62,473 bases of DNA, filler included, from Choristocarpus tenellus KU-1152 (GCA_964200185.2; 8 parts of 8 records of this genome joined end to end with filler, not necessarily neighbours in it); one strand, 5' to 3'; positions 1 to 20,339 are shown, counted from the whole stretch's first letter. Notes: a model not told the origin generated them from the sequence alone. Numbers and translations are program-made.

Positions 1-3
1 TAG

Positions 4-3000
4 GGACTACACCAGCATCATGTCCATGCCAGAGCTAAGCGCCGAAGCTGAGGACCTACCAGATAAGCATGTATTGCGAGCCAACGCATTGCTGGGGGCG
101 ATGGCTCACGCGTTGAAAAACATGTCCCTAGGCGACACTGACATCCCTCAGTGCGTGCTTCGTCCGTGGAAGCGTCTTGGTGAACGGATGGACAGACCAA
201 CCACTAGCTTCAATTCTTTGGACTGGTTCGTCTATAATTTCGATTATGTACCCGAGCGATGCTGTGAAGGTCCTGAGCAAGGAGGGCAGGTGGAGATAAC
301 CAATGGTTGGGCGCAGCTCAAACCAGCTGTGATGGCCTGCGGTGGTATGGTAAGCGGAGTTGTCGTATTGTTGATTGTAAATGCTTGTATTCCCCTCATC
401 CTCGACGTTACTACGCCGCTTCTGTGATCTTTGGGACAAATCAAGACGAGGGATTGGACTCTGTGGATATTTCTCCTGATGTAGAAAGGTTCCACCCAAG
501 GAATCAGTTGTCTTTAACATGAGTGCCTTTCCCGTCCTCCGTTTGCAGGGTGAGTATAACTTCATTATCTCTTGCCACATGATTGAAAGAAGCGCTGCCC
601 GACTACCGGGCGTTGTAGCTCGTGCTCAGCAGGCAATCCTCTCCAACAACCCGGACGCCCTCCGTGTAGAGCTACTCAACCTGCTCACTATTGTGGAGAG
701 GATGACGAAGGCTTTCCTTGGAAGTTCCCCATGCCCAATATCTTCAAAGTACGTTGACCAAGTCACATGGGGCCAAGGTGAAACGATTCGGAACTATGGG
801 TCAATAAACACAACAATTCTTACTTGTGGTTTGTCAAAAGCGCATATTCCCTGCTTCCACACAGTTGTGTAATACCTTTCTCCAGTTGTCACTAGCTGAA
901 CGGGTGGTTTTGTGACCTCAAGCACCCCTCAACCAGTTGAAACCTTCAGCAGCTTGTGGACAATATGAGAAATAGTGTAAGCGGGTAATATCTTTCCTCT
1001 GACAACTGGCCGGGATAATCCCCAAGCTAGAGTGATATGTAGTATTAGAAAATATAGCTACTACTCAACAAGTTGAAACTTTGTTAGTGGGTGGGCAGGT
1101 TTGATACAGCCCTGCCGTCACATATATGTGCATCATCCTAAATTGAAAATCATCTTTCTTGTAGGTCCCATGTGTTGTACACTGCCTGGGAACGATATCC
1201 TCTGCTGGAATCGCTGGCAGCAATCTTCTCCTTGCATCCTTTCATTGCAGTTACCGTTTGACTCGAGCAATGATTTTTATCCTCCTTCTCCCCCTGCATC
1301 ATCCACCTCCCAATTTCACTGCACAACCTGATTTTTTCATTGTGTACAAACTAGTGATTGGACGATGTGCATCTGCTGTGGTGGCCAAGGAAAAGACGAT
1401 TTCAGGCCTACTTTTTCCGAGCATCCACCTCTTGGATGCCTTCCTGGGGCGAGACCCTGGCAAAAGCTACAAGTCAGACATGGGAGTCCTGGCGTCTACC
1501 GACCTCAAGTGTCTACCCAAGTATGTGTGAAGTTCCTCATTAGTTGATGCTAGTAGGCATTGTATCTGCATACGTTACACTGAGGGTTCTGTAGAGATAA
1601 AGTGACCATTTTTATAAGTGGAGACTAATATGCCTTTTGATGCTTTAGTTGGAGTATGCTCTGTGTTGTTTCTTGATCATGTACTTCATGGGTGTTGAAA
1701 GGGTTCTTCTTCGTGTGTAGTGCGCTGTTTATAACCTTGTTTATCTAGAGTGAGTCAAATTAAACGCGAGGTACTCAGGATTGCATTTTTCGGATGCTGA
1801 CAATGTGTGCAAATTTTGGCATTTTTTACAAATGTGTGGAGGATATTTTGTTGATTCTGTCGAAACATTTCGAGCAATAGAAAAATTAACGCTCACAAGT
1901 CAAACTTACCACTTCATCCATAGAAACATGGGTTAATTGCAAAGGATGGAAGCAAATGGCTTAAAATGCAAAAAGGCCAAAACCTGGGTACCTCTCATTT
2001 ACTTCGGCTCAGTAGTACCCACAGGAATCTCAGGTATATGTAAGGCTAGCTTGTTGTGGACCCATTGCGACTATCTGTGCGGACAGTTGTGTGATGCACT
2101 AGGTTTCAAACCTTTCGACCCTGTTGCTCAAGTCACAGGTCGAGCAAAAAATACTCCTGACAAGTGCATGATACTCACAACTTGTGCGAGGGTTCAGGCA
2201 TGAAACAGGCTTACAAAAACAGATATCAGCAACAGGATTTGGTCAAATATTGCTGAAAGAGCTTAATTTTGAAATGGTGAACTAATTTCATTGAATCAAT
2301 TAGAGCGTTGTATGCCTGTGTATTTGGACATCAGGGTTGAAAAGATGTTTATTGCTCATGCGTTGTTGGATTTGGATGCTGTGGCTGTTGGAGTAAAGAC
2401 CGCCTTTGAGTGCTAAATTCGTTTGAAATAAGAAGTTTACCTTTCTGTTGTTTTTTGTCTCTTCCTTTCACCCTCCATACCTTCAAGTGGTTGTGTGGTT
2501 CAAAAAATTCTTTGGTGTTCACGCAGCTTGAGTGATGACGGAATAGTCCGACTGTAAACTCAACTCCAACAAATCTTTGTGTTCGCCTGATTCAACAGAT
2601 ATAGAGTGTGTTTTATTTACGATATACTCAAGTACTCTAAAGTATGTAGTGCTTCAGGATATTTACTTCCAAGATAGATATTGTCCAAGTAGTGATGACT
2701 TGATGAGGATCAAAGTGAGGAAAAGACGGAGATGGGAGGGTCACACACCTATCTTTGCTTAAGCGTCAAAAGTCAAATGGTTGTAGAACAGAAGAATGGC
2801 TTAGAATGTACTCTCGCTCATGTGTCTTCATGTTTTGGGGGAGTTTTTTATTGGTCTGATTATTGCTTACCCTATGAATTACATTACATCATGTGAGAAG
2901 AAATATCGGTCGCAACACAATTTGCCGACATCAATTCACCACGGTACAATTAATGTCGTACCAATGTCCTTGTCTTCCAGAGAGAACATATGATGATCAA

Positions 3001-6000
3001 TACCATTCAATTACCTATCAAGTTGATTGTTATTTTGGGATGTTTGAATTTAAAGTTCAAATGATCAAATTTATTTCTGATTTGCAGGTCATTGAGACTC
3101 GATGACGTTTCTTGGCACGTTTCTTGGTACTTTGTTTCCCTTCATATAACGATACCTACGCGAGTAGGAGCTCGTACTGCGCCCTACCATATAGGACAGT
3201 TTTATTTCCTCTATAGTATGACAGGATGAGGGAACCTTTCGCGTGTATGACCCCCCACCTGCTTACTCTCTTGTAACAATCGCATCATGGGGAAATAAAC
3301 AAAAGGAGAGTCAAACACCTTCCAATATTCTCTCAGATCTCCTTAAGTTATATTTCCTCTTTGGTGAACACTGAGACAACAAGAAGAGCTATCCCTCACA
3401 TTTGATCAGTTAATCTGCGCACACATCACAGGGTTCAATAGGTTTTGATGCTCACACGATTCCCCTTTGCCTCACTACCTCGCCATTGACACACCATGGA
3501 CTAAAGTCAAACATTAATTCATATATTCAAGAGAGAAACGACTTACATAAGTCGTGTATTGCGTACGACTCGGTATATATTTTGTTATCTGCTCGGCAGG
3601 CTCCACCGTGACTTCTTCGATGCAGTAAGAGGGGTATCCTTACTGTCATACATTGAACTCACGAACAGTAAGGAATTCCAGAACATGTTCAGGGAGGTGC
3701 ATAGCCTGTTCGTGGGCAAGGAGGGCTCATTTGGATTCCTTGAGGTGAATAGAGTTGAGGAAAAGTGAACAACACACAATGCAGATTTGCGACACCATAA
3801 TCGATGAACAGCCACCAGATATCTCACTTTCTTGTAGTCACTGATATTAAGGCTGAGCCTATGTGTCTCTACACATCCTCAGGCATTGACGCTGTAGCGC
3901 ACAATAAGTCTAGATGGAGAAGAGCCTTCAAGACAACTATATCCTTTAGACATTGTTTATCTCAACATATCTTATTGTCTCGTGTCTCGTCCAGGTCTCA
4001 ATACAGATTCAGGTTTTAGTGCCTTAGAGCAATCCTCTTGCAACACTGCTGTACCGTAATGGGAAGCCTAAATCACGCAACCTTCTCTCTCCCACTCTGC
4101 CCACTACATGTTTGTCTCCCAACAAACCTAAGGCTCATCGCCTTAAGATAATTGGATTTATGGAGGTAGCAACCAAGACTGGGCGGGCAAAAACAGCCGC
4201 TGGTACAAAGCTTGATATTGGATGGCAGTACCGGCCCTGGCTCAGAGTGAACCAATCCATGCTAGATGCGATGACTGAGCGCCAATGGATGGTGTCTGGT
4301 TCATGTACGTTCACAACTGTGCAGGTGTGTGATAGATAGGAGTGGTAGTCCACATTTCTTCTCCTTCCTCCTTCACACAATAGCACCTCAAGCCCTGAAG
4401 GGAGGTCAGTGACAAATGTTTTCAACACTAGGCCTTCACAAGCGGGCAACATGTTGAGCATATGCTTTGATGTAAGAGTCCAAGTTACCAACTTCACTCT
4501 AAGCTGTTTGCCGGCTGCATTTTGTAAGAATGTGTCCGAAGGACTAGTATTGTTCCATTGGTACATGTGAAAAATATACAGTTTCCATATTTTCTTGCAC
4601 TGTGTTAAAACAACCTTCAGTACAAGAGCAGGAACTTGACAAGGAGGTAGCAGTGATGACCCCCAAAGTGAAACAGTGGCCGAAATTCCACTTGAAGCAA
4701 GCACCTCATTAGAAGATAACAAATTGTGGGCACCAAAATGTAGACTGATGTTTATGATTTCTCTTCAAAAAGGAGTGGAACATACCTGAATACTCCCAGG
4801 AATAGTCCTAAGGTGTGATCCAAGGATAACCGTAAAGCTACGCAGAGACCTAGACGGCTCACTCCATCTAAGGATATTGCATGTATGCAATGAAACTTTG
4901 TGTTTGGTGCTCTAAAGAGAAAAAGAGGTAAATTACACTGATGAAAGCCTATCACTTTATATTGTCAACACCACAAGATTTTTCGTCCAGTGGTTTAAAT
5001 TTCTTGGTAATTCGATACTTAAGGGAGTGCACTTTTGCTGTAGGTGCTACGCCAAATACATGCTGGTCAGTTGAACTGATACCACACTCCCTAAATGTGA
5101 CAGCGAAAGGGGGCTTCAGAGGAAAGGGGGTGTGACCGTCTATGACAGAAAGATGTATATATATACTTCCCAAGTATTATCATTGGATCAAGTGTATATT
5201 TAAAGGCATTTCATGCTCTATTGTAGAAAGAATCATGGCTCCTGGGCACATACGCTCTGATACAAGGGGCCCCATGGGGGTGTGTCTCTAACATCCGAAG
5301 GGGTACCTCTGGTGCCCTTCAAAGGTGGGTCAACGGGTGCTCTCGTGAAGTTATTCATAGTGTGGGTAAGCATAGAAAATCGCCAATACATGATCTCATG
5401 GCAATCCCTAAACTTAATGTACCTGACGAGGGAATCTGCTACATTCTCCACCAATAGAATTCATTATACCATTCACCCCAGCTTTTTTATTAATTGGAGG
5501 GAATAGGGATGTGCTTTTAGGGTTAGGGTTAGGTTTAGGGTTAGGGTTTCACTTCCATATTCTATCCGATTTATCAAAAATACTGTGGTGAAAGTTAAAA
5601 CGAAGTCCATCAATGGAGAACATAGTAGCTCCCACTAACAAGGACAGCAAGTAGAGACCGAGCCATAGCGCAATGTATTGGCACCCAGTTCTTTGGATAG
5701 GAAGTAATTGACGTTGTCAACAGTGGGAGAGGGTGGACGAATCTTAAATTCCAATGTACGGTCCCTGATCTATTGACTCTTGGAGTTTTTCTTTCAATCC
5801 TAGAACAGCATCATATCGGGCAACACTAGAAGAAACCTGTATTGTATGTAGAACCAGACATGCCTGGCACCCCCCATGCCCCAACCACTCTTCCCCACCG
5901 TAAGCCTAGGCTCAAGCCCAACCTCAAAGAAGCCCTGATGATGGAGTGAAAGTATCTTAGAGGGTACGAATTTTGCCCTGTTTGTCCCTTTGGTGCTTGG

Positions 6001-9000
6001 CTCCTCATGGGGTCTTTTTATGACATTTTCCTACTCCAAAATGTTTTGGAGTAGGTAAAATGTGTACGTTATGAAAAGGTGTGTCTGGAACAAGGATATT
6101 GACACTTCCTAACAAATACCATAGCCAAAATTATATCAAAATCACAACATTGGATTTTGACTCCCAAATGGACAGCGCTCTACCCTCTAGGATACTTTGA
6201 CTCATGGCCTCTTATGTACTTGCTTCATGTATCGTTTAGCTCAAGAAATACACCAACCAACCCACCCACAAACAAATTACGCGGGTGCCGTTTCCTGTGT
6301 TGAGCTGTTGGTCCACGTCTGACCTCAGTTTTCATCCGAGTTGCCATGATCACTAGTCAGGGGTCCCGCAAAACACCCATACCTTGTACCGGAACCCGTC
6401 ACCCCCCACGGTTGCACTCACGCACTACAGTACCGTGCAGATGATATTTCCAGTATATTTCTTGCCCCAGAAGTGCGCTGGGTATGTGTCATGTCGTGTT
6501 CCCGCAAAGGCAATACATCATACATTATTTGACCACATCAATGCACCATGATGTATATTAATATTGCACCCACTCTTATGGCTTGACACTTCATACTACT
6601 GTTGTGAATTTTGGTGGAGGAGCTTTACCACTCATGCAGGTGCGCAAGCTTATAGGAGTACCCCCACTCAAAAGAATTTCTAGACCTAACCTAAAATGTA
6701 TACATAAAAATATGTAATGCAAACAGAAAAAATTGCACAACAGCAAATATGAGTAGGGTGCCCCTTATACCTGGGCACCTACATGCCGAGAAAAGCTATT
6801 TCAATTTTGGTGATATTGTAAAATTCATTTCGACAGTTATTTGTACAAGAGTTGTAGATACACTGTTACACTGTATCGAGTAGATCAGCTGAGTCTGCTT
6901 CTACTAGCCTGTACCATCTCATGCCAATATTCCAGCACTCAGTAGGAAATGTAGGGATAATACCCAAATTTGGGCTGGATTCATTTTCCCTTTGGGCTGA
7001 AATTGTAGGCCTTGTTAGAACTCACTCAGAAATATATTACATTCTCTTCAATTCTGACTATCATATTTTAATAGTCCAATTTCTTAGTGCTGCTATCGCT
7101 CTCAAATACAACCAGAGCTGTCTGGAAGATGACAGTGCTTTGGGGTAGTACTCACTCCTTTTTCCGCAAACATTATTGCTTATGTCCGAGCAGTTGCTCC
7201 CTGGGTCATCATAGTAGTATGAACCTTATGTAGAATGACTCGGTACCAAGTTAAAATATCTTTAAGAAACAATATTGCAAGCTCCAGAGTATTTCGAAGT
7301 GTAAAAAGTCTGTATATACTGTATGGTGTCTATCTGTACATCACACCATAGGTGAAACGAGTGGCAACATTGCCTGGAACGGATGCCAAGATGTTGACCT
7401 TCAACATGAAGGAGACTGGACTCCTGTTTCATCCTGGAGATCGTCTATCTGTGTTGCCGTCAAACAGTGACGAACTAGTGAATGAGACATTGGATGCCCT
7501 TGGCGAGGTGAGGGGTACAAAGTATGGGGAGAGCCGTGTTTTTGTCCCAATTGCTTCAACTGATCTCTCTCTCTCTCTCGTAGGCTCTAACCTTTTTTCC
7601 TTCCCCCCAAATTCCCTCAGACTTGTCGTGAATTTTCCAGTCATCTGCCTCTAGTATAAAGCGTATGAGCTACTAGTTGTACTCATACTTGGATATATTT
7701 ACTCTTCTGTTGCTCATACATGTCTCTTATCTCCCTGCTATTGTACCTTGAATCAACCTCCCTGAGCCATGGTCCCTTACTTGTCTTCCTCTCCACCCCC
7801 ACTGTTTCACTGTACCTCATGAACCAGGATGGAGCGCTCCTGATACCCCTTACTAATGAGTGGAAACAGGAGTGTAGGGAGAGACATATTGTCTTAGTCA
7901 AAAATAGTAGTGGCAATGAATTCCTGCCGCTATATGAGTTCCTGAAGCATGCGACTCTACACCCCATGACGCGAGATATTGCAGAGGGCACAATGAAGGC
8001 GATGTACTGCACAAGCACATTTGTCACTCGGAACTATCATCGTCTTCAGCAGGTGCTTCAACGTGATTTCTGTATGTGGAAAATTCTTTGTGTTGTTTTC
8101 TTGATGACTTCTTGTGAAGATCAGAACCTCAACATCGCTACAACAGCAGTACTAGAAATAGAAGTTACATAGATAGTGCCCATTTTGGTTCATTTCAAGC
8201 TTGGAAATTGCTTTGAAGAAGTTGGTGGTCGACTTTGAATTGGATTGGTTATCGCACTTCTCACAGGAGTTTGGAAGGTACATCTTGCCGATGTGCACAA
8301 TTTTATCGTTTGTAAAATCACTGTACTGGGCCAATCACAGAATACTGGTTTTACCACAAACAGTCTACCCTTCCCCTGCTCCGCCAGACGGATTTTGCCA
8401 CCTTTGTATCATTGGTCTTTGCAATCTCACATGTGTCACCAGGCCATGCACTACTGCAGCAGCTTGCATCCATCCTGCCCCCATTGCGCCCAAGAGAATA
8501 CTCCATCGCCTCTGCACCTAATCCACCAACTGCCCCTGAGGAGCTTTCCATTGTGGTAAGTGCAATGCTGCCTTTCCAACACTGGATTAGATAAATTGGA
8601 GATATTGAACAGACTCCTATGCGAATACGGGCACGATATTCTCCATTAATGCCCTCTTGCCACTCTTCTTGTGGACCTAGAGCAGGCTGAACTGGAACAG
8701 CTCTCCCATGTTTTATATACAAGATGTGTTTGCTCGTATAAGAATGTTACCTGCCACCCTGCAGTACAGTTACCTCAACCAACGTTTGGCAATTATTTTT
8801 CCGTTTTTACAATGTTTTTATGGTGGACTGGTCTGACCAGGTGGGTCGAGTGAGATATGGGATCACTGGACCAGCCTGGATCTTTGATTGCTCGAGCTAT
8901 ACTGACGGGAGTGGTAGATCCAATGGGTCGACCAGCAGCAGTCAGGATATAGAGGAGGTGCAAAGTAGCGGTATCTCCTTGGTGGCACCAATGGCATGTC

Positions 9001-9716
9001 AACCGGCAGGTGATCTTTCTCGAAGGAGAGAGGACAAAATTCTCCATGTCATAAGAAACGAAAGACTCAAGCCACCTCCGGCCCCACCAACTCCTTTCCG
9101 TCCAGTTCAAGTTCAAAAAGCACAGAAACATTGTCCACTGATGATGTTCATTGACAATATCGCCGTAGATCACCCTATTGTGGCACAAAATGTCAAGAGT
9201 GCTGTGGTCATGTTTTCCAAAATAAAGGGAGCCACAATGCAAACTGTGGACTCATCAACATACCTCAACTCCACTGTTGAAGGCAATGAAAAGGGATTTT
9301 CCACTGAGCGAACTTGGACTGACTCTGAAAAGGCTATCCTTGAGAAGTGTTGTGCTCTTATGCACAAGCCCTTAAGAGGGGGCAGGTTTGCGAGGATCAG
9401 AATCTGGTTTGTGGAGCTGAGTAGGGTGATCAAGGCAACAAAGGGGGTGATAGGACCTCCCCATCGGACATGGAAAGCCTTGGGGACTCCAAAGGGGATT
9501 GGGGACCTGACAGGGACGGCGTCAAACCTCTTGCTGGACCATGCTGGTCCTGGTCTGCGTTTACCAACAGCCATCTCCCCAGCCCCGAATTTTCGACTGC
9601 CAGAAGACCCAACTGTCCCAGTTGTGATGGTGTCCATAGGGACTGGGGCAGCACCGTTCATGGGATTCCTGCAGGAGATTGCAGTACAGTCAGAGAGGTT
9701 GAACATACGGAGAGAG
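4..9716 (+). CDS. IDO/PrnB-like heme dioxygenase domain fused to CPR/NOS-type FAD- and NADPH-binding reductase (partial, spliced)
   Basis: Phase-consistent GT-AG exons: 4-349, 549-777, 1355-1520, 3600-3744, 4133-4324 (IDO-like: [27 protein letters not shown]; [12 protein letters not shown]; YVDQVTW; [17 protein letters not shown]; [12 protein letters not shown]; [10 protein letters not shown] with likely proximal heme His), then 7352-7507 ([18 protein letters not shown]), 7828-8052, 8388-8555 ([15 protein letters not shown], RxYS(I)AS FAD motif), 8841-9716 (GTASNLL; [34 protein letters not shown]-domain start). 5' end is upstream of the contig and the rest of the NADPH domain is not found. 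Confidence 0.85.
1752..2010 (+). mobile_element. MITE family B copy 1 (PIF/Harbinger-like)
   Basis: TIRs GAGTCAAATTAAACGCGAGGTAC ... GTACCTCTCATTTACTTCGGCTC, perfect 3-bp TSD AGT/AGT; internal blocks (CTTCATCCATAGAAA, GCTTAAAATGCA) shared with 13271-13460. Confidence 0.8.
5517..5549 (+). repeat. Interstitial (TTAGGG)n telomere-like tract
   Basis: ttagggttagggttaggtttagggttagggttt inside an intron of the IDO-reductase gene. Confidence 0.85.
5944..6203 (+). mobile_element. MITE family A copy 1 (PIF/Harbinger/Tourist-like)
   Basis: TIRs GAGTGAAAGTATCTTAGAGGGTA ... TACCCTCTAGGATACTTTGACTC; 3-bp TSD ATG/ATG; non-coding; internal hairpin 6030-6055. Confidence 0.9.
6637..6781. mobile_element. Small (~145 bp) inverted-repeat element, probable MITE
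   Basis: Left CAGGTGCGCAAGCTTATAGGAGTACCCCCACTC versus reverse complement of right end TAGGTGCCCAGGTATAAGGGGCACCCTACTC; flanked by CATG on both sides; A-rich interior. Single copy in the window. Confidence 0.5.
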
Positions 9717-10172
9717 GTGAGCTGTTCCAAGCTATGTATTGTCACCACCTTTGCTTCTTATCTTTCATTTTTCAACATTTCTCGTGATGGGAGGGAATGA
9801 GTTGTGCTACCTTCACAATCCCATGAGAAAATATGTGTTCCTTTCTACATTGACTCCCACCCTTCCGGCCCCCACTTCCCACCATGAACCCCTTCTACAA
9901 TTCCTAAACTGCTCGCAGATGTATCAACCTCGAGTGTCTCTTCTTTGTTGTGTCAATCTTTGTGTGTTCCTGCATCATCTGTCCAGAGCAGTTCTTCCAA
10001 GAAACATACATAAAGTGCCACCAGTGCAGATTATCTCCACACTCTGAACAAACCTTGCCCAACTTTCCCCTTGGTACACTTCACGATCAAGTCAATATGT
10101 CTTGTCCTTACATTTAAACCTGATGTAGAACCTGCTTGGATGGCACCACAATTGTCCCGAAAATAAGGGGTA

Positions 10173-10432
10173 GAGCCAAAGTATCTTAGAGGGTAGCGCC
10201 GCGTCCATTTGGGGGCCAAAATCCAATGTTGCGATTTTGTTGTAATTTTGGCTATCGTGTCTGTCAAGAAGTGTCGATATCCTTGTTCCAGGCACACCTT
10301 TTCATAACGCACACATTTTACCTACTCCGACACATTTTGGAGTTGGAAAATGTCATAAAAAAAACTCATGGAAAGCCAAGCCCTAAATGGACAAACAGGG
10401 CAAAACTCGTACCCTCTAAGATACTTTCACTC
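10173..10432 (-). mobile_element. MITE family A copy 2 (flanks do not form a TSD)
   Basis: Full-length reverse copy, GAGCCAAAGTATCTTAGAGGGTAG ... TACCCTCTAAGATACTTTCACTC; flanks GTA vs CTT. Confidence 0.9.
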
Positions 10433-11062
10433 CTTGGTCATGCGCAGTAAAATTATTGCGATGTACACAAAATGCTCCAAAACATCATGATGGAGATTAG
10501 AGCTCTAGATGTCAAGTACTCTTCTTCAAACCTGACTCTAGTATCAGACCTTAGCACAGACTATAGGCAATGTCTTTGCTTTTATCTTGAGCCTTTGTCT
10601 CCTTCCCAAAAGATCCCTGGGTTGCCATCATTTCGAGGTCAAGGTTGTATCTTATAATCCGTCCCCAATTCCACTGCCATTATTAACATCTTGAGTAGAA
10701 TCATATTGCTACGCCCCGAGCTACATGAGCCAAGGATTCATACCAAGTACATGGTTAAAAAGCTCAAATTCTTCACCTTCACTGCTTATGTCAAGCATGC
10801 AGGAGGAAACCTATAGACCAGCATCTGCCCTGACCATGTACAACCTTTCTATATCTGACACTTAGCACGCTTCTTCAAACCCTAGTTTAAGCGGCTGTCC
10901 TGGCCTCGATCCAACTCAAGTCCCAACCACAAGCGATCTTCACCATCAGAATAAAATGCTAGAACGTGTTACATAAGATGCAGATCCTAACAGAACCCAC
11001 CATGACTCCACCTCAAACTGATATAATGACTCCTAACCCCTACCATGCAAAGAAGGCGGCAG

Positions 11063-14000
11063 AAATCAGCAGCCCTTATGGAGTGCAAGGCAGGACCCCA
11101 TGAGGAGGGTGAAGAGGATGCACAAAGGAAGGGGGAGAGGGGATGTGCTGGTGGGGTCAAGGACACGAGGAGAGGAGATGGCATTGAGGATAGTGGCACG
11201 AAGCTGCTGTCTTCACGCATTGGGGGACTCACAGTATCTGGTTCCAATCATGATCAGGTGGAGAGATTAATGAACTTTGTCACTCCCTCGGATACTGGAT
11301 AGTGATTGCCATTGATCTTAAAGTTGTAAGGATGCATTAACACGGTATGTTCAAATATTATTCCTCCTCTACTGAAGATTTTGCGGTGAAATGGTCGTCG
11401 GACATCTCAGGACCCACTTTATATATTGGATTAGAAAGCAGTACTCAAGTTGAACACAGCATAGTTTTGGTTGATGGCACTTCTAAGTTCTTCCAAGTAA
11501 CGTTTTGGTCTTACTACTTAATAACGTACCTGGTGATCCCAAGAGCAATTGTCAAACCCAACAACGGCCCAATGACCCCTCCCAGCCATCTCGAACATAT
11601 GTTTGGTCACACAAATTGTTTGAAGGTGGTGGTTGGACAATCTTTGCATGATCCAAGAAAGATCCAATCATTCTTCTTACTAGATGGACCGCTACTTCTC
11701 ACTCAGCTTTGTTTACCCTCAGATCAAATTTGAATCCTGACAAAAAAAAAAAAATTGGAAAGTTGGGAAAATATTTGTTGGCAGGCAATAAACTTGCACA
11801 AACTGCAAACGGTGTGCCTGACATGACCTCAAATATGTACCATGGCAACAGAGAAACTTGTTATTTGTTCTGCATTTTGGTACACTTTTTAACCGAGTGG
11901 ACATTTTCCCAATATTTCTTCTGTAGTTTGTGCAGATCCACAAGGTATAGTTTTATGTAATCGTTGAGAGAGTACATCTTGGATCGTCTCAACAGCAATG
12001 CAGGTGGACAACCAATTGGACAAGTATCACACTTTTCATCCTGTGGTTTGTTTTAGTAGTATACTACTGGCATCATGACGGATTAGTGTACCAATGCATC
12101 TCCTCCACTCCACCTTCTTGCTTTCCCTCCCCCCCCTTCTCCTCCTCCTGAACTTTCACCGCTATACTTCGCTTTCTCCCCCTCTAATATCCACATTGTG
12201 ACTGCCTACGTTGCACCAAAGCTGCAGGGCGGCAACATCGGTAATCAGAAAGGAAATCAGGAGGAGCACGTGGAGGAAGGGGTTCAGGAAAATGAGTTAG
12301 GCGGACAGGGGCCAGGCAATATACAAGAACACCAGGATAAGCCAGAGGGGACAGATGTTGTGCTTGCAGAAGCAAGGACATGGATTCTTGCCGAGAAAAG
12401 ACCCACTCTGAGGTAGGGGAGCAAAATGAAAATATGTTAGAGGGTAACAGTTTTGCCCTGTTTGTTCATTTGGGGCTTGGCTTCCTAAGGGTTTTTTAAT
12501 TACATTTTTCTTACTCTAAAATGTTTCGGAGTAGGCAAAATGTATACGTTATGAAAAGGTGTGTCCGGAACAAGGATATTGACACTTGTAACAAACACGA
12601 TAGCCAAAATTAAATCAAAATCGCAACATTGGATTTCGGCCTCAAATGGACGCGGCCGTACCTTCTAAGATACTTTGGCTCAGCAGATGGGGGTGAATCT
12701 TACTTACCATACTAACTTTGTTACTTCCAGTTGGTTGTACTTTTCAAAAGCGTCATAAAAAAATATTGCAGGCGTTTTAGCATGCAATAGTCTGGAAAAT
12801 TGCCAATTTCTGCTCACTAAAAACGTTATGATAGTGGGCGGAGCAATATATGATTTCATAAGGTATTTACTTCAAATGGCAAGTGACTTGATACATACCA
12901 TCAACAGTTTTCTGCATGGTCATACCGTGCTATTCAATACATTGCAACCCTATCTTGAAGGCTGCATCAAAACATGATACTATACTGAGAGTGTTTCAGA
13001 ATTAACTGGCGCACATCCCTTCGCACTCTTCACTGGATCAGAACTGTAATTGTGTGAAGAGACCACATTATAAATGCAGTATGTCCATCCATCACCCGTA
13101 GATACATCATTCCACCTGCCCTGCGTACGACTCACATATCGTGTTTTGGTAGAGAAATATGTAGGCGATTTTAGTAAAAGAATATTGAGTTTTCAAACAT
13201 AGGAAAAATGAGAGAAGTGTCAAGCTCCGAATTTCTTGGGCGCTTTCGTTACATGAACGTTCAAAATGTTAAGTCAAAGCAAGCGAGAGGTACCAAAGGG
13301 TTGCAATTTAAGGATGCCGAAAAAAATGTGCAAAATTTGATTTAAGGAATTTTCTTAGCAGCGCTTCATCCATAGAAATCAGGTTGAACAGCAAGAGATA
13401 AAAAGAGTTGCTTAAAATGCACAATTGCCGAACCCGAGTACCTTTCTTTTATTTTGGCTCATTGTTAACTTGACGTACGCACATGTATATATACACTCCA
13501 AGTCCTCCAAATTACTCCAGATCTGCAGGTTCATTGTCGACACTACACTAGAGCTCTGCACAACGTTGAAGTGGCATAACAAGTCCCCCTATTTGCAGTA
13601 CGAAGCCTCTTTGAGCCTTACCCAATAGGAACGTGAACTCAAGCATGGAATAGCAGGATGAGGTGGTCGGGAGCCACAACACATATTTTCATGTTGTTTA
13701 GCCTAGCTGCTGGATCAATCGTTAAATGACACACCCGTGCCCTTAGTTGGGACAGAGGTGATTAATGTCTTAAATCACATAATACCAACATGATCTTGTT
13801 TCTATTCACCACCAGCACATGGCATACTACAGTCTGATGTTACTCCTCCTTGCATATACCACTTCGGAATAGTATACAGAGAGATTGTACTACTGAGTTT
13901 ATACCACAGTGAACAGTCAAGTGCTTCCTTTGTTGGTGGCCTAGTCCTCACTCACTCGCAAAACTAGGCCAACTACCTTTGTCTACCTTTTCTACAAGAC

Positions 14001-17000
14001 TATTGGTTTGGTGACCAACAACAACCCGGTGGTCTATTGATCTGCATGGCAGGGGGCTCATGGAACATTTTGATATGTCCAAGGCCAATGCTCGACTGTG
14101 TATGGATGGCATGATCAGTGAGGGGTACCTTGTCAAGGTGAAGCTGATGCATGCACTGGTATTTATAATCCAATACTTTTCCTTGCCTTCTTGTTATTGC
14201 TGCATATACTATACTATCCATCTAGCTAATAATCCACAGAAATGTATGTATGTGCTCCGAATATACTCCTTATTCAAGTCATACCTAATAGCACCCAGAA
14301 GTATGTCATCACAGGTGAAAAATAATATAAGGTGTAACTTACTCGATAGTATGTGACACATAGCCCCTGTTACCACAGAGACCACTGATGTGGGCTATGG
14401 CTCCTCTTTTGAAGTATTTTTTTTAATACAGCGTACCTGTCTGTTGAAGTTAGATGCTACATGAAGAGACCCAACAGAGAAGCAGTTAATTACCTGTGTC
14501 CCTAATCCTGCTTTAAATCTGTTGCGAATAATTTCGAACTAGAATGAGCTATTCAAAGCAATGAACATAAAATCTAAGCATCCCTGCCACCACCAAAGAG
14601 AAGAGTGATGATACTCCGGAGTATGTGTGTATGGGTGAGTGTGTGCTTGCGCATGTGCAAGGATCAACATTAGGAATATATTAGTGCTATTTCCATTGGA
14701 ACATGCAGTAGGTTTTTCCGCACGTAGGTGGTGTTGCCCTTAACGTTCTATCGTAGCTTCACTATGGACGATTTCGGGGTTAACCAGAGGGAGACATGAA
14801 AATGCTTCTGGTACGAAAACTGCAAGGATATTTTTGAATTCAACAAGAAATATTGCAATAACTAGAACGTTTGATGGACCCACTTGGGTGTGATGGGGAT
14901 ATGGGGGGAGAATTTCAGAAGAAAGGAGATACACAAGATGATTTGGGGAGAGTGATCCCTGATGCTCTGATTCGGTCAATATTTTTAGTAGTTGCGGAAT
15001 GACGTTTGTTGTATAGGTGGAAAGATTGAAAGAGGTTCTCCTATTTACTATTTTCTAACTGTACTTTGAAGACAAAGTGTCAAGGACATGCTCCTGAGTA
15101 TTTACAAAAATTGATAAACTTACATATTTTCCAATATGACATTTGCAGCTAGTTGTATACAACTCTTTTATAGCCCACAGTATTGTGCAGAGCAATGACC
15201 CCTCATCCTGTGCCCTCTATCAGGACGCAAACCACCACTACAAAGTGGTAGGTAAGAGTGAGCATCACAAGGTGCCTCGACCAGACACAATGACTCACAA
15301 CACAGGCAGTGGCGTGGGTGGTACCGATGACATCAGTAGTACCAACTGTATCAGTGGCAACAAGGGTCCTGATCTCATGGACACTGGGACCGACGAGGAA
15401 TCTGTGCATTCTCAGGTATACTTTATTTTTCGTCATTGGAATCTTGTGATGTTATTGATGATTTAACACATTCGATTTGATATATCACACTGCTACATCA
15501 GAGGTAGATGTAAATGTGCCTGGCGACATTATTTTCGTCACTTCATTGGTTGGTGAGGAAATGACAATAGACTCAAAGTATCTCAGAGGGTAGAGCCACG
15601 TCCGTTTGGGGACCAAAATCCAATGTTGCGATTTTGAGGTAATTTTGGCTATCGTGTTTGTTAGGAAAAGTGTCAATATCCTTGTTCTGGATACACGTTT
15701 TCATAACGTGTACATTTTACCTACTCCAAAACATTTCAGAGTAGCCAAAAGTGAAAAAACCCTTTGGAAGTCAAGCCCCAAACGGACAAAAAGGGCAAAA
15801 CTTTTACTTTCTAAGATACTTTAACTCATAATACCTACTTTATATCAACAGTTGTTCATGCGAGATTACCCTGTCACTTAGACGGTTTTCTATATTCAGC
15901 TGGAACATGGAACGTGAAACTCAAGGTGCCCTTATCCAATCCTCCACCCACCAACCCCCGTCTCATGACACACTAATGAATAATGCACAATTGCATAGGA
16001 ATCCTCCTATGCCCCCAGCAACGACTCAGCCACACAGCTCCCTGAGGAGCTCACTGCGCCCCTCCAGTTTCCCCCAGCCCATGATACTGCCACACCATCA
16101 ATCATGCCCCCACCAGCAGCCCTGGGTGGCTATGAGGGCCGAAGTGTTCATTCTGGTGAAGTTTCTGCAACTGGCATGAGCAATATGGATTACACCACTC
16201 CTCCAGTTCCAAAGAAGTGAGTTTGTGGGTAGCTTAATTGCATGCATGAGCATAGGGGTGTACCGGCATGTTTGTGACATAGGAGGGATTGAATTTGTTG
16301 TGTCTTAAGTGTCTCTTCCTTCTCCGCACTTATAAATGTACTTGAAATGCTTGGCAGTCTGGATGAAGTGGACATGGACTTTGCTGCACATTATATAAAT
16401 GCTGATGTACTGGCTGGTAGGGCGGACATATTGTCTTGCGATGACTCATTCCCCCAAACTGTTAAATGCATAGCGAGTCTTTTGATCATTCTCAAGACCT
16501 ATGTTGCCTAGTCTAGCACGCTGGGGCAGTGAATCACATTGTTGCTGAGCATCACCTCTAGGAATGTACGCTATGACCTGCAAGACCTGAAACGGTAAGT
16601 ATTCACCCCCTAAACAGACTTCTATGCATGGAAACTCACTGCAATTCATGCAACTTCACCCAAAAGCAACCCTTCGACAACCGCCTCCACGAGAGTAGTA
16701 CACTCTTTGGAGTACTTAGTTCTACAGGGAAGCAAATCATAAGAAATATTGGACCCACCTCTGATGTTTTTTGTTTTACCACAAGAATTTATGCTATTTT
16801 TTAAAATATTCTATTAGGAACTTTGCAACTACGAGATACATATACAATCAAGAGCCATAGGATTTATGTAGTGATGTCGACCTCACATGAAGGTATACAT
16901 TTTTTGTGAGAATAAAGTTGTTGCAGTAAGGTGTATCACAAGTCACGTAGGATGGGTCAAAAGCAAAGATTCTTTCCAACCCTTCATTGATTGGCCGACT

Positions 17001-17337
17001 TAAGAACCAATTCTGACATTCACTGCCCACCAATCCCCCCCTCTTCACCCCACGCTGTGCTCTTCAACAAATAGTGGACTACATACGTACCTACTCATTC
17101 TATCATGACTTCTTGTACCCTGCTGCTACCCCCCTCATCTCCCTCGCTCTACACAGTGGGCAAGTCCGGCAGCAACCCCCAGCTCAGCAAAAGCCCCCTC
17201 AACCCAAGGCCCTCCTCCTGTCCACGGGCACCAAGCGAGTGCTTGACACTAGATGTGCTCCTTCCGAGGACGAGGAAGAAGACGAAGAGAAGGAAGGGCA
17301 GGATGAGAATGTTCCTTTGGACATGTATGGTGGCACG
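11063..17337 (+). CDS. Unidentified protein fragment with a winged-helix-like domain in low-complexity sequence (spliced, partial)
   Basis: Phase-consistent exons about 11063-11257, 12222-12412, 14053-14137, 15224-15415, 15999-16216, 17157-17337, giving ...VLAEARTWILAEKRPTLR|GLMEHFDMSKANARLCMDGMISEGYLVK|DANHHYKVV... (helix-turn-helix plus wing pattern) flanked by G/E/Q/P/S-rich segments. First acceptor is uncertain. Confidence 0.65.
12419..12681 (+). mobile_element. MITE family A copy 3
   Basis: Same internal sequence; left TIR degenerate, right TIR TACCTTCTAAGATACTTTGGCTC. Starts about 6 bp after the donor at 12413. Confidence 0.88.
13271..13460 (+). mobile_element. MITE family B copy 2 (internally deleted)
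   Basis: AAGTCAAAGCAAGCGAGAGGTAC ... GTACCTTTCTTTTATTTTGGCTC; flanks GTT/ATT; homologous to 1752-2010. Confidence 0.72.
15570..15827 (-). mobile_element. MITE family A copy 4
   Basis: Reverse copy, GACTCAAAGTATCTCAGAGGGTAG ... CTAAGATACTTTAACTC, TSD ATA/ATA. Confidence 0.9.
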
Positions 17338-17735
17338 GTGAGCGCTTGTTTTGTCTGTTGAGATCATGGTGCATGGGGGGTTGGTGGTGTTTTGAGGAAC
17401 AGAGTCAGAAGGATAGGCACATATGGGATGTGCGGATAGTGGTGTGCATGGGAGCTGACAAGAGGTTTGACGAACAATGGAAATGGAGGTTATGACCATG
17501 AACTGCATGAGTTAAAAATTGTTTGGCAGGGCTGGTTTCCTTGAGTTAGAAAAGGGATGGGGATAGGAGTTTGACGCCACCACTACCTAATACCACCGTA
17601 TGCAACCATAGCACTTTGTTCTTACAAGAAACAATGCAAAAATATCAAAATCAATGTATTTTAGAACCACTGCGCACTCTGCATGGTACCCCTCCCCCCC
17701 AACGTATTCTGGCTATTTGTTTATTTCTCGTGCTA

Positions 17736-17963
17736 GAGTGAAAGTATCATAGAGGGTACGAATTTTGCCCTATTTGTTCATTTGGGGCTTAACTTCCCAT
17801 GGGTATTCTAGGACATTATCCTACTCCGAAATGTTTCGGAGTATGTAAAATGTGTAGAACTATGAAACGGTTTGTCGGAACAAGGATATTGACACTTCCT
17901 AACAAGCACGATAGCCAAAATTACATCAAAATCGCAACATTGGATATTGGCCCCCAAACGGGC
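17736..17963 (+). mobile_element. MITE family A copy 5 (3' truncated)
   Basis: GAGTGAAAGTATCATAGAGGGTACG start and family interior; right TIR absent. Confidence 0.85.
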
Positions 17964-20339
17964 ACATAGGGTCACTCTTTTGAAGCTGAACAATATTTTG
18001 AGATGTCCACCATGTCGCTTCTCTGGTGTCCCCATACACAGTGAGCTGCCTTCACTCTCTCTCTCTCTCTTCTGACAATCAACCAAGAGAGTACCATACT
18101 CTAAGAACGTTTTGCCATCACGATGGTCCATAGGACTCTAGCACCACGATTCAACTTCAACTATTCGTACACAAGTGAAGAACACTGGACCACAACCCAT
18201 TGTTGCAATTTGGTCAACCATATGCTTCAGAAAACCTATGGTGTCTAGCACATATCCCTTGCAATATATTACTTTCAGTTGACATTTTGTCTTCCTTTAG
18301 CCTTTCGCTGTACTCATGCGAGCAAAGGAGGAGACTCCATTGGTAAATCTTGGCCCTGTTCTTCATAGAGGTTGGACCTAGGCACTGGTGCTGCTATTTT
18401 CTGGAGAACTGGTTGGTACATCTGGTGGCTGAACAGTAGTTAGTTGCTGTGACCGGGCCTTTGCATTATTTTCTTTTTTCTCAGGTCATTATTATTACTT
18501 CTTGCTTTTATCACTTACTCTGCATTGCAACCTCTCCCAGTAAGTTTGAGAAGACTAAATCGAGTTCCACGTTACCTAACAATAATCAAAATGTACATAC
18601 GGCTCATGAACTGAGAAAAAATAAACATAGCACTAAGGTCCATGAGCAGATCACACGCAAAACAACCAATTGAAACTTTCCCTTCTACTTACACGCAATC
18701 GAATCAAACCTTTGCAAATTGAATAGCTTAGATTCACAACCCTAGGGAACAAGAACGCAAGAAATCTCGTGGACAAAAAATGAAATACAAACACATGTAC
18801 TGAAACTACTCATAAAATACACGAGTGGACTGAGATCATGGCACTTTCCGGACCAACATGTAGACACCACAAGGACATTCCCCTCTATAGGCTGTCAGTA
18901 TATGCTTGTTCAGTTTGTTGAGAAGGACTCCTTGGGTGATGCACCGTAGGTCAACAAAGTCAAGTAATGCCTACCACCTCTCCCATACACATAAAAACTA
19001 CTATAGTCCCCCAGAGCTCAGCCCAAGCTCAACAAAATACATACCAAAATTCCCCTTGTTCCTCAGATGTCAAATGTACAACCAGATGCATGAAAACAAT
19101 ACAAACACGGCTAGAGTCAACTCAAAGATCAAACTGCAAAACCACAAAATGCAACTAAACATCCAATTCAGCGGAGATCCAGAAGAACCAGTCCCTACTC
19201 AGCACAGAACTTCTGGGTCTTGTCACACTGCTCACTATGTCCCATTGTAAATCACACCAAAATAGTACCACAAATATGAAGGTAAGAAGATAAGAAGTCA
19301 AATATCCCTCTGCAATTGTCTCCCTTGGCAAAGTACACAACCAGTCACCTTCAGAGTACGTAACAGTCACTCTCGAAACTCAAACCAGTTGATGAGGACA
19401 TGGTCCTAACACTCTGTCTGACACACACACACACACACATGATCTTCATCTGAGCTCCTTTCACCGACTCGTACACACTGGAGACAAGCAGATACTTTCC
19501 CAAGCAATCTCTGGATCATAAAGGTCACCTCTCATTTCAGCCTCTGCTTATGGGAAGGTTCCCTCCGACAGTGCAATCGTACTTCCCAAACCCAACACTT
19601 CACTAGCCTGGGCTAAGGCCACAGCTCCGGCACCCAGATCCCCAACACCATCACTGGCCACCAGCACTCTCTTGATGCATGACTATCACCAGAAGTTGGT
19701 CATCCATTTCCAGTAGTCCCATCCCTCAGCACAGAGAGTCAGGCACCCATTGATCTAACCTGTAAAGATCCAAAGTTATCGCATGCTGCACCATTATCAT
19801 TGCCTTGGTCAACATAATGTACATTCCTTGAATAGCAATGGCCCACACCCCCATCCCTAAGGGAACCATCATACCACATGTAGCCTACCTCATAGATGGC
19901 CTCAAACCCTGCAAGAGATATTTGATGTTGGAACCACAGTTCTCCTTGCCACCTCCCTTTGTCACCTGATACACTATACACACTCTACATTCCGAACTCA
20001 CAACACAGGCGCTGCACACATAGCCAAAGGAACGTCTCCTTCAACTGCCTCAGTTCCCCCAAACACAATTATTCCCACTCCTGGAGGAGCTGCTTTCCCA
20101 GGACCTATGCAGCTCACTCTACATACCAGCACTTACAAAAGGCCCTGCCTTGCTGCTGGTGAGGGTCACACCTACCCCTGGACACAGAGAGATCGCCATC
20201 ATGATAGCCAGTGCACCCTTAGGGGACAAAATTCTTAGCTGCGGGTCAAAGTATCTGAGGGGGAGGGGGGGGGGGGGGGTGTTGGGGGCCGTTTTCCCCC
20301 CTTTTTTTGGTTTTTGCTTTTTTTTGTTGCGGTAGAGCG

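Follow-up and report, generated by a model that had tools for sequence, protein, structure and literature searches.

Decades of debate surround the question of how cells keep the haem iron of indoleamine 2,3-dioxygenase (IDO) ferrous; one leading candidate is cytochrome b5 together with a flavoprotein reductase. Here we analyse a gene of the brown alga Choristocarpus tenellus KU-1152 (GCA_964200185.2) in which an IDO-type haem domain is fused to a module for flavin adenine dinucleotide (FAD) and nicotinamide adenine dinucleotide phosphate (NADPH). The window, that is, the whole stretch of DNA analysed (62,473 nucleotides, filler included), holds this gene on contig C401 (20,339 bases), one of 27,310 contigs in a 164-Mb assembly. 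An earlier note, made from the sequence alone, had proposed such a fusion in an alga or stramenopile, and the host is indeed a stramenopile. We refer to the gene and its full-length homologues as the fusion family.

Among described systems, human IDO1 and IDO2 with microsomal b5 and reductase share the fold over the whole domain, with a distal Ser, the SG loop and, putatively in the fusion family, a His-bearing proximal helix. The partners reported to support human IDO1, b5 and an NADPH flavoprotein, are of the types found in the fusion family. However, IDO1 and IDO2 are stand-alone proteins of ~400 residues served by these partners in trans, whereas the fusion family holds them in cis; identity between the two is ~18–20%, R231 and F163 of IDO1 are not conserved, and the fusion family has an extra 22-residue loop. 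P450BM3 (CYP102A1) and NOS likewise begin with a haem oxygenase domain, and the NADPH/FAD module fused to it belongs to the same family as the one found here (E 1e-43 to 1e-36). Their haem is Cys-ligated and served by a flavin mononucleotide (FMN) shuttle, whereas the fusion family has an IDO fold with a putative His ligand, no FMN, and b5 placed after the reductase. The arrangement typical of P450BM3 and NOS, a catalytic haem and an NADPH reductase in one polypeptide, is nevertheless present.

Flavohaemoglobin (Hmp) is similar in design: an O2-binding haem domain with a His ligand is fused to a module for FAD and NAD(P)H, and FMN is absent. It differs in its globin fold, its small reductase of the FNR type and its direct transfer from FAD to haem, and in having neither b5 nor a helical tail. 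In assimilatory nitrate reductase, NCB5OR and the fungal CBBR (PMC12462446), as in the fusion family, b5 and an FAD/NAD(P)H reductase form one covalent unit; b5 feeds a third redox centre in those proteins, as it would in the fusion family. Those proteins are of the FAD_binding_6 type, usually use NADH, and work with Mo-cofactor, CS or P450 partners, whereas the fusion family has a CPR-type FAD_binding_1 domain, an NADPH-type AFSRE motif and an IDO partner. The domain order proposed for the window gene, IDO-FAD-NAD-b5, is found in uncharacterised database homologues, which are 35–56% identical for algal and protist members and ~25% for fungal ones.

Gene structure and the spliced junction

Evidence from the window was gathered exon by exon, and fold tests were run on homologues. 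Single exons, searched against Pfam IDO and PDB sequences, yielded no useful match. Because the exons are too short and too divergent for direct matches, we adopted family profiles built from 12 full-length homologues, one for the haem half (433 positions) and one for the reductase half (806 positions). The haem profile matched the first five exons (E1–E5) colinearly at positions 69–416 (E 3e-33 to 2e-8), as expected from the five haem-domain exons that the earlier note had drawn, and the reductase profile matched E6–E9 at positions 7–368 (E 1.4e-7 to 5e-20). Such matches are far beyond chance. No profile position is lost between E5 and E6, and there is thus no exon hidden in the 3-kb intron 5.

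Three public read runs of one study contain the locus. Two of the three behave like DNA, with even cover across introns and exons, while the third, X3, covers exons only and is for that reason read as RNA; its run type is not on record, so that RNA is a reading of its behaviour, and the depth of its contigs is no measure of expression level. A 678-nt X3 contig of depth 44 covers 4131–4322 and then 7350–7443 without a mismatch, joining 4324 to 7352 across a GT..AG intron of 3027 nt with no stop at the junction, exactly the in-frame joint that had been predicted. This joint is missing from both DNA-like runs, and X3 depth within the intron is 0 across 4500–5499 and 6300–7299. The joint from 8555 to 8841 is likewise present in X3, and the interior of E9 (8864–9518) is a single X3 contig of depth 50. 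These data confirm that the fusion of an IDO-type haem domain to an FAD/NADPH module is expressed in this copy.

Adjacent genes for a stand-alone IDO-like protein and for a reductase might merely look fused, and the 3-kb gap between E5 and E6 and an in-frame Met 14 codons into E6 could be taken that way. The spliced contig across this gap and the absence of an in-frame stop after E5 speak against two genes. In addition, all full-length homologues hold the domains in one open reading frame (ORF) at the same spacing, including the intron-less bacterial members and the transcript-derived full-length ORFs of Endostelium and Eucheuma, and the gap shrinks to only ~500 nt in a complete paralogue on contig C2358. 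We give the two-gene explanation hardly any credence.

In all, nine exons lie on the plus strand at 2–9716, with AG acceptors, GT donors and compatible phases, and together give 2505 nt or 835 codons without a stop. The exons of the earlier note stand, and their number is corrected to nine, in a gene that is cut at the 5' edge of the contig. E1 (2–349) encodes parts of the small and large IDO domains (haem profile 69–178, E 3e-33) and ends in the donor GTAAGC. It is 91% identical to the paralogue protein P0001, in which residues 1–39 precede the match; ~39 N-terminal codons of the window gene are therefore missing at the contig edge. E2 (549–777) holds the distal-pocket helix, with the Ser equivalent to S167 of IDO1, and YVDQVTW (haem profile 171–256, E 6e-23), and ends in phase 1. 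The loop and helix equivalent to IDO1 GGSAGQSSVFQCFDVLLG are in E3 (1355–1520; haem profile 249–307, E 2e-17), where the spacing from W to SG is the same as in the family consensus. E4 (3600–3744) contains LHRDFF...GFLE, corresponding to the PPAHRNFL... region of IDO1 (haem profile 303–356, E 2e-8), and E5 (4133–4324) contains AHRLK, whose His is the putative proximal haem ligand, and completes the IDO domain (haem profile 355–416, E 1.5e-16). A shorter E4 with its donor at 3711 was dropped in favour of 3744: the piece of the RNA contig begins at 4131, so that the preceding exon ends in AG, and 3744 gives GFLE-AHRLK, which matches the family motif GFLGKHRLR.

Intron 5 (4325–7351) is enlarged by a high-copy repeat of ~260 nt at 5936–6204. 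Beyond it, E6 (7352–7507) encodes the first strands of the FAD barrel (Pfam FAD_binding_1 31–68, 24.8 bits; reductase profile 7–56, E 3e-11). E7 (7828–8052) corresponds to the 'connecting' helical subdomain of a CPR-type FAD domain, by the reductase profile (58–126, E 1.4e-7) and by tblastn of the homologues P0006 and P0004. E8 (8388–8555) carries the FAD RxYS motif (FAD_binding_1 169–203, 23.1 bits; reductase profile 131–187), and homologue alignments start from 8382/8391. A splice model with donor 8071 and acceptor 8443 between E7 and E8 was 11 residues short and was dropped for 8052/8388, since homologues align from 8382–8391. E9 (8841–9716) is open over 292 codons and comprises GITGPAW, an insert of ~230 residues and the start of the NADPH domain (reductase profile 288–368, E 5e-20). 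The motifs listed in the earlier note were all found in place, in E3, in E5 (AHRLK), in E6, in E8 (REYSIAS) and in E9 (in the stretch that begins with FRLP).

Domain identities and the homologous family

The family haem profile matched human IDO1 at E 1.8e-25 and also matched IDO2; PrnB was not among the matches, and the label 'PrnB-fold' in the earlier note gives way to IDO1/IDO2. An AlphaFold2 model of homologue P0003 (residues 1–450, predicted local distance difference test score (pLDDT) 83) superposed on the IDO2 and IDO1 crystal structures with Z 38 and a root mean square deviation of 2.1–2.6 Å over 340–359 residues, covering IDO1 10–403. P0001, the paralogue product of E1–E3, which is 82–91% identical to window E1–E3 by tblastn, scored 45 bits against Pfam IDO (cut-off 26), and full-length homologues scored 48–78 bits. 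Taken together, the profile and the model place the haem half in the IDO family (PF01231), with a predicted two-domain, all-helical fold.

We then compared residues of the pocket. The distal Ser (S167 in IDO1; NFIIS in the window) and the Ser of the GGSAG loop (S263; ISG in the window) are kept. Residues that bind L-Trp are mostly lost: in an alignment that is gapped here and provisional, F163 is replaced by Asn, F226/F227 by Lys/Thr-Tyr, and R231, the anchor of the Trp carboxylate, by Pro in the family and Gln in the window, within YVD(P/Q)V(E/T)W. All 12 family members compared share the His-Arg pair of AHRLK in E5, which lies on a helix at the expected offset. Since the Trp-carboxylate Arg of IDO1 is not conserved, we do not think free L-tryptophan established as the substrate, and the tryptophan oxidation suggested in the earlier note is not borne out at this point.

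The reductase profile matched P450BM3 reductase, SiR-FP, nNOS and CPR among PDB sequences at E 1e-43 to 1e-34. The scores of E6 and E8 against FAD_binding_1 are each under the cut-off of 32.3 bits alone, which the homologues exceed, and both REYSIAS (RxYS) and GTGAAPF (GTGxAPF) are present in the window. A Flavodoxin_1 match was found in none of 8 scanned and 15 precomputed homologues, and in the window E5 is spliced straight to the first FAD-barrel strand. With the FMN flavodoxin domain absent, the protein is not a diflavin reductase. The earlier note was therefore right that the CPR/NOS/SiR-type module follows the haem part directly, without an intervening FMN domain. The insert of E9, between the GITGPAW strand and FRLP, is expressed but poorly conserved, with a ratio of non-synonymous to synonymous differences (pN/pS) of ~0.6 against 0.1–0.3 elsewhere; homologues have 120–320 residues at this site and a bacterial member none. 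We take it for a disordered or lineage-specific loop.

A HMMER search of the whole library with E1 alone retrieved 86 proteins, most of them 1000–1450 residues long. In the best seven full-length proteins (P0002–P0008), Pfam identified IDO, FAD_binding_1, NAD_binding_1 and Cyt-b5, always in that order and in agreement with precomputed domains; the earlier note had expected the first three, and had mentioned a C-terminal b5 in similar proteins. Full-length homologues are ~1100–1600 residues long and colinear with the window exon by exon, and all have b5 except some bacterial variants. They occur in red algae (Eucheuma; Gracilaria domingensis, annotated 'NADPH-cytochrome p450 reductase'), in the amoebozoan Endostelium, in fungi (Fusarium and Colletotrichum, ~1600 residues, annotated 'sulfite reductase flavoprotein' or 'uncharacterized protein') and in bacteria, namely the Proteobacteria metagenome-assembled genome (MAG) BP9.bin86, where the neighbours are bacterial, an Actinomycetota MAG and an FHA-bearing variant. 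Of 301 genomes sampled from the phylum to which the Proteobacteria MAG belongs, that MAG alone has the whole fusion, which indicates a patchy spread, as had been supposed for bacteria, fungi and protists.

The FHA variant (ENA contig_4347, 6001–9108) has its FHA domain N-terminal to IDO and FAD_binding_1, and no b5. The Proteobacteria MAG also has a stand-alone IDO-like ORF of 386 residues (C41:6820–7803), 30% identical.

After b5, the algal and protist members examined and bacterial P0037 have an all-helical domain of ~200 residues (for example P0003:1065–1275) with the motif LEHRSVFxLDxNxF. Its AlphaFold model has a pLDDT of 86 and a predicted template modelling score of 0.84. Foldseek found no credible relative of this tail in the PDB or in the ESM Atlas, and it matches no Pfam family; a conserved tail of this kind might be a docking or regulatory element. 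In the full-text literature that we searched, subscription journals lying outside its coverage, no description of the fusion architecture was found. As far as we can see from that literature, the family is widespread, catalogued by automatic annotation and undescribed.

The 3' part of the gene and its paralogues

Each segment of the gene is present exactly three times in the genome. C2358 carries a complete paralogue, with all parts on one 11.4-kb contig, and C16849 (5' exons) and C2357 (remaining exons) complement each other; C16849 encodes the NCBI protein CAM9902478.1 (P0001) at 100% identity. The third set is C401 and C1175. C1175 covers positions 371–652 of the reductase profile, directly after position 368 where the window ends, and its phase-0 acceptor cag|GTG at 3724 fits the phase-0 donor of E9. 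The exons of C1175 are open and encode the NADPH-type AFSRED and YVCG motifs, with an aromatic D-L-F where CPR has the FAD-stacking Trp. A cytochrome b5 domain follows at 5645–5851 (PF00173, 56 bits against a cut-off of 23.7; VHPGG and QAHG), and the start of the conserved helical tail lies at 7866–8006. We infer that C1175 carries the 3' exons of the window gene, for the rest of the NADPH domain, b5 and the tail. The C-terminal b5 mentioned in the earlier note is thus found both on C1175 and in the full-length homologues. As for the self-contained enzyme that it pictured, haem and reductase on one chain hold good, while self-sufficiency would need b5, which for the window copy depends on the proposed link to C1175.

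The ratio of non-synonymous to synonymous substitution rates (dN/dS) against the paralogues is 0.09 for the haem exons (versus C16849), 0.27–0.36 for all C401 exons and 0.15–0.19 for C1175 exons, values which indicate purifying selection on the gene. Synonymous difference of E1 from C2358 is 4.6%, against 13–43% in most other exons, 6.4% in E8, and 32% between E1 and C16849; the low divergence of E1 from C2358 points either to gene conversion among the paralogues or to a chimeric assembly where the contig ends. The gene model of CAM9902478.1 (C16849 2208–2483) is spliced as ...KPA|YNF... and loses the nine residues VMACGGMGE, including a family-invariant Glu; splice sites that retain them are present in both C16849 and the window, with GTAAGC as the donor and cacag|GGTGAG as the acceptor. 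A separate IDO-like gene at C4654:273–1716, on the minus strand, gave 61 bits to Pfam IDO on one exon and was not retrieved by the fusion-protein query. The genome thus appears to have, in addition, a more canonical IDO of another clade.

The region after E9 (9717–20339) is presumably intron 9, or else lies beyond a rearrangement. tblastn and profile searches detected no further exon in it, and no family-matching ORF, other gene, tRNA or Rfam match was detected there either. A search of homologues with the last 100 residues of E9, for RNA-derived peptides bridging to a next exon, also gave no match. The window copy may accordingly be broken: a rearrangement or large insertion in intron 9 would have split C401, with the 5' three-quarters of the gene, from C1175, with the 3' quarter, leaving a truncated IDO-FAD transcript, with no b5 and an incomplete NADPH site, and leaving the function to the paralogues. 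The same intron is ~330–460 nt in the paralogues, repeats are plentiful in 9717–20339, and X3 depth falls to 4.8 at 9500–9699 and to 0 at 9700–9899, all of which fits such a break. On the other hand, the copy has 835 open codons and intact splice sites, is expressed and spliced (depth 44–50), and shows dN/dS below 0.4 on C401 and the still lower values given above on C1175, where all exons are open. The acceptor on C1175 is in phase and the profile continues there without loss, and contigs of a 27,310-piece assembly often end at repeats. We regard a broken copy as quite improbable.

The ~260-nt repeat is interspersed in both orientations, in the window at 5936–6204, 10173–10440, 12427–12682, 15570–15828 and 17736–17961 (the last four after E9), and on C1175 at 1292–1552, 6146–6406 and 8068–8330. 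Copies are 80–88% alike, and the summed depth of their contigs, 1e5 or more in all three runs, marks the repeat as very high-copy. It has no tRNA part by ARAGORN and no Rfam match, and looks like an element of the type of short interspersed elements or miniature inverted-repeat transposable elements. The 99.6% match between window 10173–10432 and C1175:1293–1552 was considered as a contig overlap and rejected, because it coincides exactly with the repeat unit and so reflects two young copies. Toward the 3' end of the contig (18500–20339) the sequence is C/A-rich and of low complexity, with a GC skew of -0.27 to -0.34, an AT skew of +0.17 to +0.23 and no coding signal.

Proposed chemistry and its significance

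We consider it rather probable that the window holds codons ~40–875 of one of three paralogous genes for a multidomain haemoflavoprotein of ~1250 residues. The protein would consist of an IDO haem domain, an FAD/NADPH module without FMN, b5 and the helical tail, and it would probably deliver electrons to an Fe(II) IDO haem for O2 chemistry. In the sequence of events that we propose, NADPH would reduce FAD, FAD would hand single electrons to the b5 haem, and b5 would reduce the IDO-type haem to Fe(II), which could then bind and activate O2 on an indole-like or other aromatic substrate. In this scheme b5 would stand where P450BM3 and NOS have their FMN domain. The electron path, the preference for NADPH, the O2 chemistry and the class of substrate are read from domain content and motifs. 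In vitro, NADPH-CPR with or without cytochrome b5 is reported to support IDO1, and b5 has been named a major reductant in cells (PMC13142367, its refs 49, 54, 55). IDO-type O2 chemistry on an indole-like substrate is favoured here because the distal Ser and the SG loop are kept.

Several points weigh against this proposal. E7 and the first part of E8 were not seen in X3 contigs and are supported by homology only; broken X3 contigs are to be expected with three similar expressed paralogues. The missing first ~39 codons are not assembled anywhere in the genome. The link between C401 and C1175 implies an intron of >14 kb or a split copy, and the 10.6 kb that follow E9 contain no 3' exon. R231 and F163 are not conserved. 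The HMMER alignment to IDO1 ends at residue 343, three before H346, and the fold search returns ranges, not single residues; the proximal His is therefore putative, assigned from its invariance and spacing. In a dioxygenase the haem has to be re-reduced only now and then, and permanent fusion to an entire NADPH chain is more characteristic of enzymes that spend electrons in each turnover.

The same architecture could therefore serve another chemistry, in which an IDO-fold haem spends one or two electrons per turnover as a monooxygenase, a nitric oxide (NO) dioxygenase or another small-molecule redox catalyst, acting much as flavohaemoglobin does, rather than being a re-activated Trp dioxygenase. 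A complete fused chain from NADPH through FAD to b5 is the design of electron-consuming enzymes, as in P450BM3, NOS, flavohaemoglobin and nitrate reductase, and it is this permanently fused chain that makes a monooxygenase or NO dioxygenase the principal rival. MarE is an example of a monooxygenase on a TDO scaffold. The loss of the Trp-carboxylate Arg points the same way, and no match to kynureninase, 3-HAO or TDO was found in the genome, a weak negative given an exon-by-exon search of a fragmented assembly. Brown algae have been reported to make NAD via aspartate rather than by the kynurenine route (PMC4217691), human IDO1 has a documented monooxygenase activity (PMC12921851), and the b5/b5-reductase system is reported to serve the NO dioxygenase cytoglobin (PMC7948950). 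The retained distal Ser and SG loop, which are typical of Trp-handling IDOs, argue in the other direction, as does the report that an IDO-like myoglobin is not a faithful NO dioxygenase (PMC3820574). On balance we hold this other chemistry to be unlikely. Within the proposal that we prefer, O2 chemistry on an indole-like or other aromatic substrate, the lost Arg, the reported aspartate route and the absence of kynureninase, 3-HAO and TDO matches argue against plain tryptophan catabolism.

A bolder reading is that the family represents a third independent design of the P450BM3/NOS/flavohaemoglobin type, on an IDO scaffold with b5 in place of FMN, which would use NADPH electrons in each turnover on a non-tryptophan substrate or NO. 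We put this forward tentatively, as possible though doubtful; if it is true, brown algae, with three paralogues, gain an undescribed oxidative or signalling pathway.

A natural fusion of IDO, b5 and reductase that is conserved among bacteria, fungi, red algae, amoebae and brown algae lends support to the pairing of IDO with b5 and a reductase, and gives enzymologists a single polypeptide on which this pairing can be measured. It would lengthen the short list of self-sufficient haem oxygenases by a new haem fold with a b5 shuttle instead of FMN, which is of interest for biocatalysis. Database names taken from the reductase part alone mask the catalytic domain of these proteins. In brown algae, where the kynurenine route to NAD is reported to be missing, three copies that are expressed or conserved would imply an undescribed substrate and pathway.

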